Assembly (NCBI GenBank): GCA_009103225.1
Contig: RHPI01002262.1
Location: 875,478 to 939,477 of the forward strand
Length of the DNA stretch: 64,000 nt
Origin: Chlorokybus atmophyticus
Lineage: Eukaryota > Plantae > Mesostigma and Chlorokybus algae
Direction: 5' to 3'
Below are positions 32,206 through 41,488 of the stretch, piece by piece (position 1 is the first letter of the stretch; the number at the start of each line of letters is the position of its first letter). The notes beneath the pieces were generated by a model. The model was not told the DNA's origin and ran no database searches. It saw only the letters and a program-made list of their open reading frames with translations. A program made the position numbers and the translations under genes.

Positions 32206-33027
32206 TGACAAGGAGGACAAGGACAGGGACAAGGACGACAGCAGCAATGCTTGCGGCAGTGAGAGATTGTGGCAGTGAGAAATTGAAAGGAAAGGATCGA
32301 TGAGACAATGCAGGTGAGGTTCTTGTTGATAAACTTGTGCTGTGTGCAGGGTGGGTGAGCGTGTGCTGTGCGTGGTCTTGGGTGTGATGGGGAAAACGCC
32401 ACAGTTAATGGCTGAGTAGTTATCATCATATGCATAACGTTCTTGTTTGCTATTCAGGTGATTTGCAACAGATGGATGTGTAGAACCCAAGGCTAAGAAA
32501 AGGCGACCATGCATGTGCTAGCTGGAGCGGCAGCATACACTTGTATATACCCACATGCGGATGAGCAGTAGTAGTGTGACGAACCTGACTACTTGTTGTT
32601 GAACATGTGTGTGCTTGTGCACAACATTGTATACATGAAGATGTGCACGCGCACACACACACACACACACACACATACATGCGTGCTCGCATGCGCGCAC
32701 CTGTACATAGCTACAGATGCTGCGAGTAGTGGTGAAGTTGGTAACCATGCGTGTACACGTTTGACACTGTATGTTTCAACACACCCATGCACATGCACAT
32801 GCACCAGCATGCGCGCAAAGCGTGCGCGAGAACACGCACACATTGCGTCCCGCTGCATTTCCAAAACTGCATGGCTGCATGTATGCCCTTCACACCACAC
32901 TATTCTCAACAACATCCAGAGCGCAATCTTGAGAACACAACACGCACCATGTCACGCATCTATGTGACACACGAGCGCCCAGCCGCACAAAAAAAAGAAC
33001 CTCTTGCAACCTACTACACTGCATCAA

Positions 33028-35435
33028 TCACATGTCCCTCCAGTCAAACTCCTTTGCATAATACGCGTTCGGCAGCCCGAGCCAGAACTTGAACCTCTGC
33101 AACGCCACCACTCCCGCACTATCATGTTGCTGCTGCTGATGCTTATACCCATGCCCCTTCTTATGCCCCAAACCGGACCCCGAGCTGTTGTTGTTGTTGT
33201 TGGGTGTATTGTTGGCGTACATGGCAGTACTCAACTTGTTGCTATGTGTTGTGTTTCCGGGAAACAGCTCGATGAACAGCCTCTTGAACTTGAGTCTATC
33301 GGGCGCTATCCCGCTCGCTTCCATCTGATCGACGAGGTGTAGCGCGGCGTTGAACCTGCGCGCGCGCAAGCACACGTCCACGAGGGCGTCGTACGCCTTC
33401 TCGTCCACGCCCTCCGCGCCCAACTCGGCACGCATCGCGTCGTACACGCGCATCGCGCCGTCCGCGTCACCCGCCTTGCCGTAACACTTGATGAGAGCGC
33501 CGAAAGTGGCGACGGTGGGACGGACACCAGAAGACCTCATGCGCTGCACACGCACACGTACATGTTGTGAGTAGCTGCGTGTGACAAGTACAGTTGCTGT
33601 AGTGGGTGTGTGCGCACTAGATACATGCATGGAGGTGTGTATGTGGGTAAGGCAGGCTACAAGACAGTGTGATGAGAACACACACGCATGTACATCAGCC
33701 ATACTCAGTCATGCTGTTGGGTTTGTTGACTGCATACCACTACAAGCACACACAACTACACACCTGCGCGCACATGCACACACAAAAACACGCATGCACG
33801 CACACGCACTGTACACATGCATGCCAACACAAGACTACTCACCTGGTAGATTGCATTCGCATCGACAGCCCGTCCCACCCGCGCGAATGCATCAATGACC
33901 GTGTTGAATGCAACCACATCCGGCCTGATGTTGTTGCTGTTACTATTGTTGTCATCGCTTTGCATCTCCTCGAACAGTCTCAACGCGTCGTCCGGCTGTC
34001 TTACACACGCGTACCCGCGCATGAGCGTGGTGTAGCTCGTTACGTTGGGCCGCACGCCACCACCCGCACGCATCTCGTCGAAGAAACGTTGGGCGGCGGG
34101 AAGGTCCTCGTGGAGCACGCACGCCATAAGGAGAGTGTTGTAGGTCACGACGTTGGGAAAGGTGTCAACCTCCTTGTTGTTGTTGTTGTTGTTGTTGTTG
34201 TTGATGGTGTTGGTGATGATGATGTTGTTCACCTTGTTGGTGTTGTTGTTGTTTCTCGCCTCCTCCTCCTTGTTGTTGTTGACCTTCTGCTTGATGTTGT
34301 TGGTGACCTTCTTCTTCATGTCATTGAAGAGTGCTATTGTCTCATCCAGTCTTCTTCTTTTGGCAAAGCCTGCCAGTAGCGCGTTGTGAACGGCTGGCGT
34401 GATGTCGATGTTGGCGATGTTGGCCTCGTCGTACACGCCGAGGGCGAGCTCGAGGTTGTGCGCGCGCACGCACCCGCTGATAAGGTTGGTGTACGTCACC
34501 GCGTTGGGTTTATGCGTTGTGTTTGTACGCATCTTGCGCAGGAGGCTGAACGCGCTCTGCATGTCCGCTGCATCAGTGTAACCCTTCAATAGTTGGGTAT
34601 ATGTCTGAGCTGTTGGTTGTAAGCCCGCTTCGACCATGTTGTCGCACGTCGTCACGGCGTGTGCGACATCTTTAAGAGCCACAAACGCGCCGATGAGGGC
34701 GTTGTATGTCACCTCCGTGGGGGCTATGTTGGCTTCGCGCATGCTTTCAAGCACACGAGAGGCCTCTTTTCTCCTCTTGTGCTTGCCATAAGCGTATATG
34801 AGCGTGTTGAAAGTGCGCTCGTTGGGTTTGAGACCCCTCTTTTTCATATCTTCAAGGATGCCTTCGATATCGCGCCAACTGCCTGCACGCGCGAACGCGT
34901 ATATCGCCGCATTGAAGGCCTGGATGTCAATATCGACCGGCCCTGAGGTGGATTTCAGCTCCTCCCACAGCAATATCGCCACGTGCTTGCGGGCCGCATC
35001 GCGCGCGAAACAACTCATTAGAGAGGTGTAAAGAGGGGGAGTGAGCTTCACGCCTTTCGCGCGTGCACGTAATAACAACTCCTCCGCGGTGTCGATGTCG
35101 CCAGCAGCCGCCGACGCAGTCACCAACGCCCTGAACGCCGCATCTGATATCGGCGCATCGCCCATATCAACCAACCTCCTCGCATCACGCAGCCTCCTCT
35201 TGCGACAACACAACATGACCAACTTGTTGTACAACTTCGCCTCGGGCGGGACGCTCATCGCTTGCAGCTCCGATATCACCCCCAGCGCGTGAGACATCCG
35301 CCCCTTCTCGATGCAGAAAGCCAGCTTCTTGTTCAGTGTCAAGGATGTCTTCTCGGGGCCGATATCACCCTCTCCCGCTGATGTTGACGCATGTGTGGCT
35401 GTCGCATCCTCACTCTCAGTTGATCCTTTCTCCAA
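33028..35435 (-). CDS. HCF152: P-class PPR protein, HCF152-like; 2 visible exons; first exon and transit peptide not identified
   Basis: About 13 PPR motifs (e.g. PNERTFNTLIYAYGK, PTEVTYNALIGAF, PNVVTYNTLLMAC, RPDVVAFNTVIDAFAR). The C-terminus DVCLRA...GIAPDRLKFKRLFIE...RFKFWLGLPNAYY is the HCF152 signature (FKFWLGLPNSYY). Exons 35435-33843 and 33543-33028. Confidence 0.85.
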
Positions 35436-35654
35436 CTGCAAAACAACAATACCAATATGCCCACATACTCAGCAACATACACACACTTGGAAGCACGTGG
35501 TAATGTTGTCCAAACCGGTCACGAACATGACCCCGACATACTTGTTATGTGTACGTGTGTACATGAGTGTATCTCTGTCGAACCTCTATCTCTGACTGTG
35601 CTACGTGTGTCTACTACTCAGGCAACCAAAACTGTGTCACAATACTGTGTTGTC

Positions 35655-38469
35655 TCATCTGCCGACGATGGCGTCTAGAGCATGGCGCACGGTGCTGTAC
35701 TTGAACCTAAACCCGAGCTCCTGAGCCCGCCTCGGGACCACCCTCTGACCCTCCAACACCTACGCGACAACAACAAAACACACACATTCGCATTCCTCAC
35801 CAGACACTCAGAAGCGACCTTGACACCGGAAAGTCCCAATCAGACAACACCCACATGCCCCACAAACACACGCACACGCGTGCGCGCGCGCTCACGTACG
35901 CATGCACTCACGCTCGCATGCCTACACGCATGCAAGCACGCACGCACAATAACGCGTGCACGCACACGAATGCGTACACACACGTACGTGCACACATATA
36001 TGCTCAAGCCACATACACATGCACACAAATGCGCGCATCCGAACACACACGCACACACATCCCCCGCCCTCCCACGCGCACGCGCACACGTGCATGCTCG
36101 ATAACAAACCACTCACCACTTTGGCTCCTTCTCCCAGCGCCATCTGCAGCGCAAACTCCGGTACCGGCAGCCAGCTCGGTCTCCCCAAGGCACTCCCCAG
36201 CTCCCTGCACATCTCGTCCATGCGCACGGGGTTGGGCGCGGTGCCGTTGAGGACTCCGTCGTAGGAAGGGTTGGAGAGGGACTCGAGGATGAGGGAGACG
36301 AGGTCGTCGCGGTGGACCCAACTGAACCACTGGCGACCGGAACCGAGGGGGCCGCCGGCGAAGAGCTGGAAGATAGGGAGCATCTTGGCTGGGGGAGGAG
36401 GAGACACAACAGGAGGTGAGAGGCAACATAAGAGGTGGATGCGGGCGTGCGCACGTGGAGTGTCCTATCGGGTGTTATTGTTGATGTTGTACGCACGCGC
36501 ATGCGTGTGTGCGAGCGCGTGCGCGTGCATGCATCAACGTGTGCGGGTGCGGGTGCGGGTGCGGGCGCGTGTGAGTGCGTGCGTGCATGCATGTGGGTGG
36601 ATGTGGGTGTGGTACTGTGATGAGGTGATGTTGTGAATTCTCACCTAATGCGCCACCATCTTTGTCGAGGACAATCCCAAACCTGATGGTTACGCGTCGG
36701 ACGCCGTCGGTGACTTTGGCGGCCTCGCTCTCCCACGCGCGGCACACCTGATGCGTCATAACTCATGACATTCAACCACACAAACGCATGATAACGCCAC
36801 ACACGCATGATAGGGCCTCGCACGGACGTGCACGCAGCACATACACGTGCGTGTGCGTGCACGCAAGTGCGCGAGCATGCATGCAACCACGAATGCATAC
36901 AAACATGCACACACGCACACATTAATGGCTCAATCACCTCAGCGAGGTAGTCGCTGCCGCTTGCTGCCCGCTCGTCGAACTCTTTCGCATCATCGCTCGT
37001 GCCGTAAAAGCCAACAGCCGAGGCGGACACGAGCACATTGGGCCGGTTCTTTGCACCGTTGATGGCCTCAACGACCTGACGTGTGCTTGTACGTGGGCGT
37101 GTGCATGTGGTTGTTGCGACTCTACACTTGTCTAAGGTACATTGTGAGTGTAAGAACCCCAACACATGTACATACCCTCTTTGTGGCTTCAGTTCGTGTG
37201 GTCTTGATGCCGGCCTTGACCTGCGTCAACCGGCCGTCGTGGGAAACCTCCTGCTGGCTAACCGTTGGACAAACATATACCCACATACACCCACACACCA
37301 GCACGCAGGCACATACCCACACTTTGACACACAGCATACATGCACGCACCCACGCGCCCACACCCAAGCACGCGCATGCACGCGTGGGTATATACGTGTG
37401 TGTGCATGCATGTGCGCACACTCACACGCAAATACCCCACGCATAAAGCCAAACATGCATGTGCGCGCGCACGCACATATTCCCACCCACGCCCTCGCAC
37501 GCACGCATGCACAGCGCCCTGTATCATCCTCCCACACCAACCCAACATGCACGCATCCACCAACGTACGGTGTCGTTCCAGCGTGTAGATATGGGCGCAC
37601 CCGCCAGGTTGACCACACTTGTGGCGCCCTCCACGCCACGCGCCCAGTCTTTGAGCTCGTAATAAGACAGCGCATCCTTTCTCCTCTCTGCAAGGCAACA
37701 ACACATTTTCATATGTGTTACTCTTGCAATGGTGTTGTTGTTGTTATCGTTGGGTCGCTGCTTTACCTCCTTTAAACAAGTTTTGTGCATTGGAGGCGTT
37801 TCGCGTCAGCACGCGCACTTCATGCCCGCCTGTAAAACCAACTTGCATGGTGATGCTGTTGTCGTTGTTGTTGTTGTTGTTGCACCATCGCAGAGCTCAG
37901 AAACTTGAGAATGCAGTGTGGGTACGACTGTGTGTGTGTGTACGACATGCATGCAACCAATGCATCACCAAGTAAACACAGACACTTGCCTTGCAGCAGC
38001 TTTGCGACAAGGCGCGAACCCACAAAGCCTGTGGCACCCGTCACGGCCACAACCATCTGCAGACATGCGAACCAACAACAGTGAATACAGAGCAATTAAC
38101 ACAACAAATTCAATAAAGATCCATGTGTATCAGCCTTCGTATTGGTTTGACGTATCCGACCTTGCCGCTTTGTGTCTGTGTCGCTTGTTGCTGTGTTTGC
38201 TGCTGTGCTTGGCAGCGAGGTGGTCGCCATGCACGATGCAACGGTACTCTCTGTCCACAGCTGACCCTCTCACCAACGACGCCGACAAGGACGCCGCCGC
38301 CGATGCGTGCCTCGCCGCCCAGGAAGCTGGAGGAAGGGGTGGCGGCGGCGGTGGGAGTGGCGTCCTTGCGCTGAGCGGGAGTGACTTCTCCCCGCAAGAC
38401 ACTTGACGACAACGACAACACCCTCGGCGACCCGACCGCCGCGGCCGCCGCCGCCGCCGCCGCCGCCAT
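35655..38469 (-). CDS. GC1: Plastid NAD-dependent epimerase-family protein GC1/AtSulA (SDR39U1/YfcH family); about 9 exons
   Basis: Transit-peptide exon 38469-38161, then [79 protein letters not shown] and [21 protein letters not shown]; stop TGA at 35657-35655. Confidence 0.95.
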
Positions 38470-38719
38470 GTTGCTGCACTCCTCTCTGCAAGCATGGCTG
38501 AAGGCGTGGATATCTTGAGATCCGCTCGAAGCCGTCCGATGATGGATTGGACCAGATCGAACGCCTCTTCGTGTGCCCACGTGGGCTGATGAGCACACTG
38601 TATCACCGCTCGCTTGTCAGCGCAGTTGTTGTTGGCATCAGCGGCGGCGGCGTTGGTGGTCAGGGACATTGACAAAGCGGAGCAGCAGGAGGTTTACGCA
38701 AGCGGCAGGAGCGGTCACC

Positions 38720-40347
38720 ATGGCGGTGGTAGCGACAGCCTCTGTGGCCTCCTGCTCGTCCGCGGCGACGGCGTCTTTGTCCTTGTCGTCGTCCAGGGCG
38801 GCGGCGGGGGCGGCGGCGGCCGCATGCAAGTTCAGGAGCAGGAGAGGGGTGTTGGCTACCTCCAGGCGGTCGGCAGGGCTGTCGCTGCGAGGGCGGCGAT
38901 CGTCGGTGCTCCAGGTGTGCGCCAGCGCAGACACCACCTCGAACGCAGACAGCACCACCACCAGCAACGCCGCGAGCAATGCCGCCGACACCGTCAAGAC
39001 TGCCGCTGACACCGTCAAGACTTCTGCTAACAAAGTCAAGGAGGAGCTTGTTGCGGATACCTCCTTCAACCTCGCCAAGGTGGTGCCTAATGCACTCATC
39101 CCACACAAGCAGCGCTTGCATTGTGTGCATTTTGCACCAAACAACACAACACACCAGCGGATCAGAGAGTAATATGTATGCATGGACGCCTCCCATGTTG
39201 TGCTTGTTGAGATGTTGCGCTCATTGTGTGCGTGTGTGTCTCTCACAAAACAGATCTCGCTGGGCACTGTGGGCCTCAGTCTCGGCTCCTTCCTGCTGAG
39301 GTAAGTCATTGATATGCCGCGTACGTGTGGGCATATGCTGCTTACCAGGGAGTGTGTGGGTCCTTCCCAACCCACATTGTACAATTTGTGTATGCGTGTG
39401 TGCCGACCACATTGAGACAGTTGAGACAACATGCCCACGTTGTGTCAGTTTCGGTTTCGGCGCCTACTTTGATCTCCTCCCCGGCGGTGCTTTCTCCGCC
39501 ATCATGTTGACGTACGGTTTCCCTCTCGCCCTGATCGGTTTCGCGTTGAAGTACGCGGAGCTCAAGCCCGTGGGTTGCGCCACGACGGGATCGGCCCTCG
39601 CCCTCCGCGACGCGCAGGCGACGGACATCCTGAAACAGGTCCGGAATGATGTGACCAGGTATAGATATGGAGATGAGCAGCATCTGGACGAGGCACTCAA
39701 ACGCATATTCCGATATGGACAGGTGGGTGGGTGTGGGCGTCTGTGTGTGCGTGTATTATACGTGTTGTGGGGTGCGAGCAAGTTCAAGTGTGCAAATGTC
39801 CATGTGAGAGTTGTGGCCATTGGCAGCTGTGTGTGTGCTTCTGTGTCTGTGTGCAGTTGTCCCTAGTGCATGCCCACGACCATGTGGTTGTGCGTAACGT
39901 GCGCACACGGAATATGCACCATCACAGCATGCACTGAGTAAGATTTTATGTTGTTAACGTGCGGGAGAGTCTCTCAAGCATGACAGCAGCATCTGCATCT
40001 GCCCATGCACACAGACGAACTACTCGCGTGTGGATTACTGCGCAGAACACGTGCAGCAGCATGTATGTATGCGATTCGTGGCTGTCACTTAATTGTTGTG
40101 TCATGTATCTATGCAGGCCGGAGGCATCCCGAGGCGGGGTGCCCCTGTCCTCGTGGGCATCCGCGAGGAGGTGCAGGATGAGGGCCGCTACACCCTCGTG
40201 CTGGAATTCGACCTCAGGCAGAGCAAGGTGGAGGACTTCACCTCACGTGAGGCCAAGTTCACGTCCTTCTTCGGGCCCGGCGTGCAAGCGCGCATTGTGG
40301 ATGCTGGCAACAACCGCGTGGATGTGGCACTTGTTGCCACCGCCTAG
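38720..40347 (+). CDS. APE1: Acclimation of photosynthesis to environment 1 (thylakoid DUF2854/slr0575-like protein); 4 exons
   Basis: Transit peptide, then LLSFGFGAYF..LPG..FSAIMLTYGFPLALIGFALKYAELKPV, QVRNDVTRYRYGDEQHLDEALKRIF, YTLVLEF and KFTSFFGPG. Confidence 0.93.
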
Positions 40348-41488
40348 TAGGTTGATGAAAAGAAAAGTTTTGCGTATGGAGTATATACTTAGAGACCACA
40401 TTGCCTCCCTGCATGTTTGGTTGTTTTTGTACATCCAATTGATATGATGCTTGTCTGCTTGTCTGTTTGACCTCACTTGATTTTTACTAGGACTCGACCA
40501 AATTGACTTGTATGTGTGAACCTCTAGATGTGGCATGCCCATTGAAACCAGTTGGCAAGCCCACTGATTCTGCAACCATGCCAGCCTGTGCTTGTTCCCA
40601 CAAATCTGATTTGATTACTTCATCATGAAACAAGCACAATCCGGTGGTGCGGCCATGCGCTGGGCGGCCCATCCCGCCGACCATGGAGGCAAATGCGGCG
40701 CTGGCTTTTGCAGTAGGTAGCTGGTCGGGTGCCAATGACGATGATGGCAGAGACGGCGGTAACTGTGCTGTGTGGTGGGATGCGGTAATGTGTACAAAAG
40801 ATGCAACTGGGTTGGGTGTACTGGATGCTGATCAGACATGCTACCGCACGGTATGTTTATTTGCACACACTGTACACACAATGCGCTACGTCATTGCTCA
40901 TGCATAGTGTCATTCATCACACGTATTGGAAAAAGCATATAGTCCGCACTTACTCTGCCATATATGTACACTGAGTTATACTGCTACACTATGTACATTA
41001 CCTACACTACCTACACCACCACCCCGTTAGTCATGCAAGTTATGCATACATCACAATGTAGTTACCTGCAGCAGGCAAGCACGCAAGCAAGCACGAGTCG
41101 CTGTCTTGCTATATGGCAGATTCACCGCATTGCATTCTTTGTACAAATGCATGTGTACAACAGATGGTATGCTACCATATGTGCTTGTGTGCGGACAAGG
41201 TGGTGTGCAGCAGTGAGCTACGGGTGCTGTGGTGTAAGTTTGTAGATTGTAGGTAGACTGTTGCTTTACATATGCATTACGAATGCACGGCCTGCCCCAC
41301 TACGCTACGACATCCAAAATGGTTGAATGCATTCTGCTGAGTACAGCTTGTTGAACACTCCACAGGTTGCAATCTGTTGAGCACAACACAGCAGACACGA
41401 TGAGGTAGGTAGCCAGGCCAGGCCACAACAGCTCAGCCCAGCTGATAAAATTGCAGCAACATCTTTGAAGCTCACACGCACTCATGGC

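Follow-up and report, generated by a model that had tools for sequence, protein, structure and literature searches.

Where does the reading frame of an HCF152-type pentatricopeptide repeat (PPR) gene begin, when its first visible exon opens at a splice acceptor and has no start codon ahead of its first repeat? The question is raised by a locus of the alga Chlorokybus atmophyticus, in a stretch of 64,000 nucleotides (nt) from contig RHPI01002262.1 of assembly GCA_009103225.1 (positions 875,478 to 939,477 of the forward strand), here called the window and numbered from its first letter. On the minus strand at 33028-38469 the PPR gene follows closely upon a GC1/ThyD-like gene, the first exon of which resembles a plastid transit peptide. 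An earlier reading of the sequence (the original prediction) held that the PPR gene might share that targeting exon, be fused to GC1, or be carried with it on a bicistronic transcript. The answer reached here, with about even confidence, is that the two are separate tandem genes and that the first exon of the PPR gene has gone unassembled. RNA evidence was taken from the cleaned de Bruijn assembly contigs of four runs (X1, X2 and X3 where they must be told apart), contig depth serving as a rough measure. The features on which the argument depends are these, with a slash marking splice sites here and below:

33028-33543, minus strand: last exon of the PPR gene, 171 codons plus stop, with the C-terminal RFKFWLGLPNAYY..FDWRD motif.
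33544-33842, minus strand: PPR intron, 299 nt, GT-AG, phase 0, with the joint 33543->33843 in X1 and X3.
33843-35435, minus strand: first visible exon of the HCF152-type PPR gene, 531 codons, starting in phase 0 at the acceptor, with its first Met at codon 47.
35437-35530, minus strand: stretch without RNA contig cover, ending in a polypyrimidine tract and the acceptor AG.
35531-35654, minus strand: GC1 3' untranslated region, with contig ends at 35548 (X1) and 35531 (X2), overlapping the start of a possible mini-exon (ATG 35564-35562).
35655-38056, minus strand: exons 2-9 of the GC1/ThyD-like gene, from spliced RNA contigs, frame and profile matches.
38056-37990, 37829-37767, 37687-37569 and 37220-37176, minus strand: GC1 exons 2-5.
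37075-36938, 36747-36645, 36388-36117 and 35759-35655, minus strand: GC1 exons 6-9, with the stop TGA at 35657-35655.
38161-38469, minus strand: GC1 exon 1, ATG 38469-38467, 309 nt, 103 codons, donor AAG/GTCGGA, phase 0.

That the PPR frame opens at an acceptor was borne out in both coordinate and sequence: the site reads ttgttttgcag/TTGGAG, the first exon base is 35435, and the exon runs on as TTGGAGAAAGG. The frame is closed by a stop 12 codons ahead of the exon, and the first in-frame ATG within the exon is codon 47 (35297-35295), which lies inside the first repeat. In an alignment with 16 orthologs, the exon product from about residue 32 on, including residues upstream of Met47 (LNKKLAFCIEKG, residues 34-45), matches the first helix in 14 of the 16. 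AlphaFold, run on the ortholog alignment, gave a model with a mean predicted local distance difference test (pLDDT) score of 89.5, in which helical hairpins are predicted from residue 27 on, the helices at 27-43 and 47-59 having a pLDDT of about 96; residues 1-21 are acidic and disordered in the model. Over the first 144 nt of the exon, the third codon position is richer in G+C than the first two. A start at Met47 would, according to the model, delete the first helix of the first hairpin. As no ATG precedes codon 47 and a conserved helix lies upstream of Met47, an upstream coding exon is required; judged from the alignment and the model, PPR coding must begin in an exon upstream of 35435, and the claim that the visible exon lacks its own 5' end stands.

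The label "HCF152-like" was also upheld. Searches were run exon by exon, the joined coding sequence being used only for length and for counting stops; joined, the two visible exons give 702 codons in an open frame. P-class repeats occur in both exons (Pfam PPR_2, E 4e-69; PPR, E 1e-59), and the exon at 33543-33028 encodes the C-terminal tail RFKFWLGLPNAYYAKEFDWRD. The tail motif FKFWLGLPNxYY..(D/E)W recurs in 69 fetched orthologs, and "At3g09650, chloroplastic" is the name of many of these; the same C-terminal motif is present in the Mesostigma and Spirogloea proteins that are the best matches of the window protein. The repeat array and the tail of the orthogroup make the gene an HCF152 ortholog. 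With the 531-residue exon as query, word-based and exhaustive protein searches returned no protein from this alga, the best match having at most 39% identity, so that there was no annotated model or transcript-derived N-terminus for comparison. Exact look-ups of the partial product predicted from the X1 PPR contig, and of Spirogloea, Mesostigma and one Trebouxia protein, likewise gave no match. A separate peculiarity of the protein is an Asn/Lys-rich insertion of 51 residues between PPR repeats, encoded by AAC-type repeats at 34316-34164 (minus strand) and missing from the Mesostigma, Spirogloea and Mamiellales-like orthologs that were aligned across the region. The RNA contigs break at this insertion, where unrelated contigs attach through the AAC-type repeat.

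The orthologs suggest, by their sequences, that the missing exon should add about 30-100 residues. They also bear on another explanation, namely that this copy lost its 5' end by rearrangement, leaving a remnant that is still transcribed, or else a gene whose translation begins at Met47 or at a non-AUG codon and whose product lacks a normal transit peptide. The orthologs in a Mamiellales-like contig, Trebouxia and Marchantia paleacea each have an N-terminus and start of their own, and these three lineages encode the transit peptide and the first helices contiguously: the gene is intronless in the Mamiellales-like contig and M. paleacea, and the Trebouxia ortholog has introns, none of them at the position of the intron ahead of the window exon. 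Three Spirogloea muscicola models of HCF152 (P0168, P0268 and P0269, 601 residues) all begin at the Met homologous to Met47. These facts, and the failure to find a first exon, are what a truncated copy would lead one to expect. The Spirogloea models are, however, probably 5'-truncated annotations, cut as a gene finder would cut the window locus, to judge from bryophyte orthologs that are 110-260 residues longer overall. The window gene itself, moreover, is intact over 702 codons, its repeat array and C-terminal motif are both conserved, and it is spliced and expressed; its frame is open through the 46 codons before Met47, where third-position G+C is raised and the conserved helix lies. Loss of the 5' end is accordingly considered improbable. 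In Mesostigma viride the ortholog Mv06513 is represented by four isoform models (P0001 and P0273-P0275) of 605-761 residues with differing N-termini, one of them having an unrelated Pro-rich start.

The upstream gene had been described correctly in the original prediction, its 103-codon phase-0 first exon included. GC1 has nine exons (38469-35655), and its coding sequence of 1221 nt, or 406 amino acids, is open when joined. Four exon pieces, each scanned singly, matched the TIGR01777/ThyD profile at positions 1-21, 104-148, 184-273 and 274-305; position 1 is the Met that opens exon 2, exon 8 accounts for 184-273, and exon 9 ends at 305 of 305. Pfam, also searched exon by exon, gave a DUF1731 match (E 5e-12) and none for exon 1. 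As the Met of exon 2 falls at profile position 1, exon 1 is a pure N-terminal extension, and in composition (A 0.18, S+T 0.17, D+E 0.04, net charge +7; rich in Ala, Ser, Thr and Arg) it looks like a transit peptide. From its sequence, exon 1 (38161-38469) resembles a targeting module placed before an ancestral start in exon 2 (37990-38056).

All eight GC1 introns are backed by spliced contigs in X1 and X2, including the joint 38056->38161 at the end of exon 1; the presence of spliced contigs identifies both runs as RNA. With the PPR intron, nine introns of 79-357 nt are confirmed. Past the stop, the GC1 contigs continue for 107-124 nt, to 35548 in X1 (depth 387) and to 35531 in X2 (depth 20). 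With its eight joints contained in single long contigs and the ThyD profile matched from 1 to 305, GC1 is a complete, stand-alone mRNA. The difference between runs in the position of the contig end may reflect alternative poly(A) sites, and no A-tail is visible in the contigs. Among the introns, the second (37830-37989, minus strand) is GC-AG (CAAG/GCAAGT...ACAG), as spliced contigs from two runs attest, and the fourth (37221-37568, minus strand, 348 nt) is retained in an X1 contig at a depth of 21 as against 387, or about 5%; the remaining introns have scant or zero contig cover. Upstream of the GC1 ATG, about 250 bp at 38470-38722 with a G+C of 0.63-0.70 separate it from a plus-strand open reading frame (ORF) that starts with the transit-peptide-like MAVVATASVASCSS, and the region looks like a bidirectional promoter; contig cover is zero at 38439-38600. 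A loose end of 16 letters at 38341 is not found in the window and follows a GCC repeat, and was taken as a repeat-mediated join.

Between the GC1 stop (35657-35655) and the PPR exon at 35435, on the same strand, lie 219 nt, in agreement with the spacing of about 220 nt given originally. The absence of a GC-rich island from this gap was likewise confirmed, G+C being 0.47-0.52 as compared with 0.66-0.70 at two bidirectional promoters. The gap sequence is unique within the window, and an Rfam search of 32800-38800 found no family. In X1 no contig lies over 35437-35547, although the PPR exon has a depth of about 49 and GC1 of about 387; together, the PPR contig (as far as 35436) and the GC1 contig (35548 onward) account for the whole depth of 66.7 in the bin 35383-35573 of that run. 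For PPR transcripts, 35437-35530 is intronic or intergenic. At the other end of the PPR gene, an X2 contig extends past the stop to 32964, in the 3' untranslated region.

These contigs speak clearly against an unspliced bicistronic mRNA, that is, a single transcript running from the GC1 ORF through the 219-nt spacer into the PPR ORF, after the manner of chlorophyte polycistronic genes. The common strand and the length of the spacer would suit such an arrangement, the median inter-ORF distance in chlorophytes being 212-260 nt (PMC7896298). Against it stand the zero cover of 35437-35547 with both flanks covered, the unequal depths of GC1 and PPR, the stop 12 codons ahead of the PPR exon with no AUG before codon 47, and an upstream ORF of 1221 nt with many AUGs, which is unsuited to leaky scanning (PMC7896298, PMC11291117). 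No transcript spanning both ORFs occurs among the contigs. As the GC1 contigs reach no farther than 35548 and 35531 and the PPR ORF has no AUG of its own, the proposal of bicistronic read-through is left unsupported and can hardly be credited.

Two further explanations place the start of the PPR gene in or near the gap. The weak mini-exon and intron of about 50 nt that had been pointed out do exist as sequence (MYTRTHNKYVGVMFVTGLDNITTCFQ, 35564-35487, 26 codons, followed by an intron of 51 nt), and the peptide is indeed unlike a transit peptide. It is conceivable that the PPR gene starts there, or at a shorter form such as 35564-35532 (11 codons, donor GGG/GTCATG, intron of 96 nt), from a promoter overlapping the GC1 3' untranslated region. 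Both forms are in phase with the PPR exon; the 35532 donor ends in ..GG, which is compatible with the G at the end of the PPR contig described below, and the X2 GC1 contig ends at 35531. The stretch 35487-35547 is nevertheless without contig cover in X1, the 35487 donor ends in A and so mismatches the G35436 that precedes TTGGAG, and an intron of 51 nt would be shorter than all nine confirmed ones. Neither peptide resembles a transit peptide, acidic residues come directly after it, and there is no Pfam match. The contigs thus speak against the mini-exon as the main 5' exon, and a start there is very improbable. An assembly fault, by which the promoter and first exon of the PPR gene would be absent from the reference between 35437 and 35547, would account for the unusually short spacing as well as for the missing exon. 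The flanking RNA contigs, however, match the reference without mismatches and have no loose ends leading into other sequence, and the 3' end of the intron (pyrimidine tract and AG) is present, which makes a fault of this kind highly unlikely.

The most informative contig is that of the PPR exon in X1 (1254 nt, depth 49, covering 34286-35436), which stops at the final base of the acceptor AG, G35436. None of the 12 X1 contigs on the stretch, each of them accounted for, overlaps this end. A dead end at the acceptor AG indicates that the acceptor at 35435 is very probably in use. Assemblers of this type remove minor short junction paths during clean-up, and a fork at this point, pruned of its branches by such clean-up, is the best explanation of the dead end. 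As the contig ends at G35436 without an overlapping contig, its upstream neighbours in the graph were dead-end tips, and therefore not a retained link into the GC1 contigs (depth 387-424). Any two upstream paths with nothing but this G in common would account for the overhang: an exon of the gene's own ending in [C/G/T]G and unspliced RNA, for instance, or GC1 exon 1 (..AAG) and GC1 exon 8 (..GTG). With only GC1 exon 1 and unspliced RNA as the two paths, the contig should end at 35437, whereas the end observed is 35436.

A further explanation is that the PPR gene has no first exon and receives its start codon and transit peptide from GC1 exon 1, possibly from exon 8 as well. Transcripts from the GC1 promoter would pass the GC1 poly(A) sites and splice the phase-0 donor at 38161, that at 36117, or both, to 35435, giving a transit peptide-HCF152 protein, a GC1(1-372)-HCF152 fusion, or both. 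Several points favour such sharing: coding sequence is required upstream of the PPR exon; the 103 codons of GC1 exon 1 form a pure targeting module that ends in phase 0, and there is no other transit-peptide-like exon nearby; the PPR contig ends one base upstream of its exon, at a G, as if exons ending in ..AG and ..TG fed into it; and minor short junction paths are of the kind lost in clean-up. The two donors, at 38161 (exon 1) and 36117 (exon 8, 36388-36117), have the coordinates and phase first ascribed to them. Five of the eight GC1 donors, however, are in phase 0 (those of exons 1, 4, 5, 6 and 8), and an agreement in frame that comes so cheaply is weak evidence for sharing. Neither 38161->35435 nor 36117->35435 is found among the contigs of the four runs, a weak negative in that cleaned contigs drop minor short paths, and at neither donor is there a break in the GC1 contigs. 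A single donor at exon 1 with the unspliced form predicts the wrong contig end, as noted, and a splice from exon 1 to the PPR exon must skip eight exons with good splice sites.

Depth and synteny are further points against sharing. GC1 and PPR contigs have depths of 387 and 49 in X1, 20 and 4-13 in X2, and about 260 and 3-5 in X3; the ratio of GC1 to PPR is thus about 5-8, 2-4 and 60-80, respectively, or about 2- to 80-fold across runs. So wide a spread argues for separate regulation and is not what one promoter would give. As for synteny, proposed originally as a check, no GC1-like gene was found within 8 kb of the HCF152 ortholog in the Mamiellales-like contig, Trebouxia or Marchantia paleacea, so that the two genes are not adjacent in these three green-lineage genomes. 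Variation in the ratio and the absence of synteny from these other genomes both tell somewhat against a promoter common to the two genes, and loan of the targeting exon from GC1 is rather unlikely.

A first exon for the PPR gene was also looked for directly. Among all ORFs running from an ATG to a phase-0 donor on the minus strand of 35437-40500, there was no transit-peptide-like candidate besides GC1 exon 1. ORFs within the GC1 introns were rejected as first exons, their translations being Cys/His/Arg-rich products of TG/CA-rich repeats. An X1 contig at 35818-35998, in the last GC1 intron (depth 4.3), abuts the donor-like AAG/GTCG; it has an in-frame stop and no ATG, was also rejected, and is best read as pre-mRNA. 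A tblastn search of the window with the Mesostigma N-terminus found nothing, and HCF152 N-termini bear no resemblance to GC1 exon 1. Farther upstream, the next gene on the minus strand is a WD-repeat gene resembling a translation initiation factor, which starts beyond 41.5 kb.

Two separate tandem genes would then be organized as follows. GC1 would be transcribed from the bidirectional promoter, spliced eight times, and ended about 107-124 nt after its stop. The PPR gene would form a separate unit, regulated differently from GC1, in which the exon at 35435 is an internal coding exon, the second or a later one. The start codon, followed by a plastid transit peptide of about 30-100 residues, would lie in its first exon, which may be short or thinly covered, trimmed from public RNA assemblies and unrecognisable by sequence alone. 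The missing exon probably belongs, on this account, to the PPR gene itself, and the protein is probably targeted to the plastid. Several observations weigh against this arrangement. Neither the gap nor the GC1 introns hold a first exon that combines an ATG and an in-phase donor with transit-peptide-like composition; on this strand no transit-peptide-like coding exon other than GC1 exon 1 occurs for more than 6 kb upstream; and there is no G+C-rich island in the gap, so that the gene's own promoter and first exon would have to fit within about 95-110 nt, or else sit inside or beyond GC1. The end at G35436 would, in addition, need a fork of paths sharing just the G, which GC1 exons 1 and 8 would also give.

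Both proteins have well-defined relatives. Like the SulA-like epimerases (TIGR01777, cyanobacterial ThyD, DUF1731), window GC1 has a Rossmann GATGFVG start and a DUF1731 C-terminus, and it differs from TIGR01777/ThyD proteins in its 103-residue N-terminal extension from a separate phase-0 exon. HCF152 (Arabidopsis At3g09650) is a plastid P-class PPR protein that binds and stabilises processed psbB-operon RNA. The window gene likewise has the PPR array and the C-terminal tail; it differs in a lineage-specific intron ahead of the first helix, in the 51-residue Asn/Lys-rich insertion, and in that no N-terminal start or transit peptide was found at the locus. If the two genes are simply separate, the case is one of annotation, with a first exon overlooked by gene finders and short-read assemblies alike, and the three Spirogloea models probably share the same truncation.

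As for gene pairs, two same-strand ORFs with a spacer of about 220 nt recall the polycistronic mRNAs of green algae, which have one promoter, one poly(A) tail, ORFs of equal abundance, an AUG for the downstream ORF, and upstream ORFs that are small, with a median of 444-600 nt (PMC7896298, PMC11291117). The window locus shows none of these traits. In grass sdh2-rps14, alternative splicing supplies two proteins with one targeting exon (PMC1543663; Kubo et al. 1999 cited there). Chimeric mRNAs are documented for that pair, whereas the contigs of the four runs hold none for the window locus, and rps14 lies within an sdh2 intron, whereas the window PPR gene lies beyond the last exon and 3' ends of GC1. 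The likeness is that of a startless downstream exon in frame with an upstream targeting exon on the same strand, and the phases agree as they do there, GC1 exons 1 and 8 ending in phase 0 and the PPR exon starting in phase 0. To our knowledge, gain of a transit peptide by alternative splicing is known mainly from organelle genes moved to the nucleus in grasses. Were the PPR gene to borrow the GC1 targeting exon, an epimerase-like protein and an RNA-stability factor of the plastid would depend on one promoter and one such exon, and the locus would be a nuclear-gene example of that mechanism in an early-branching streptophyte alga.

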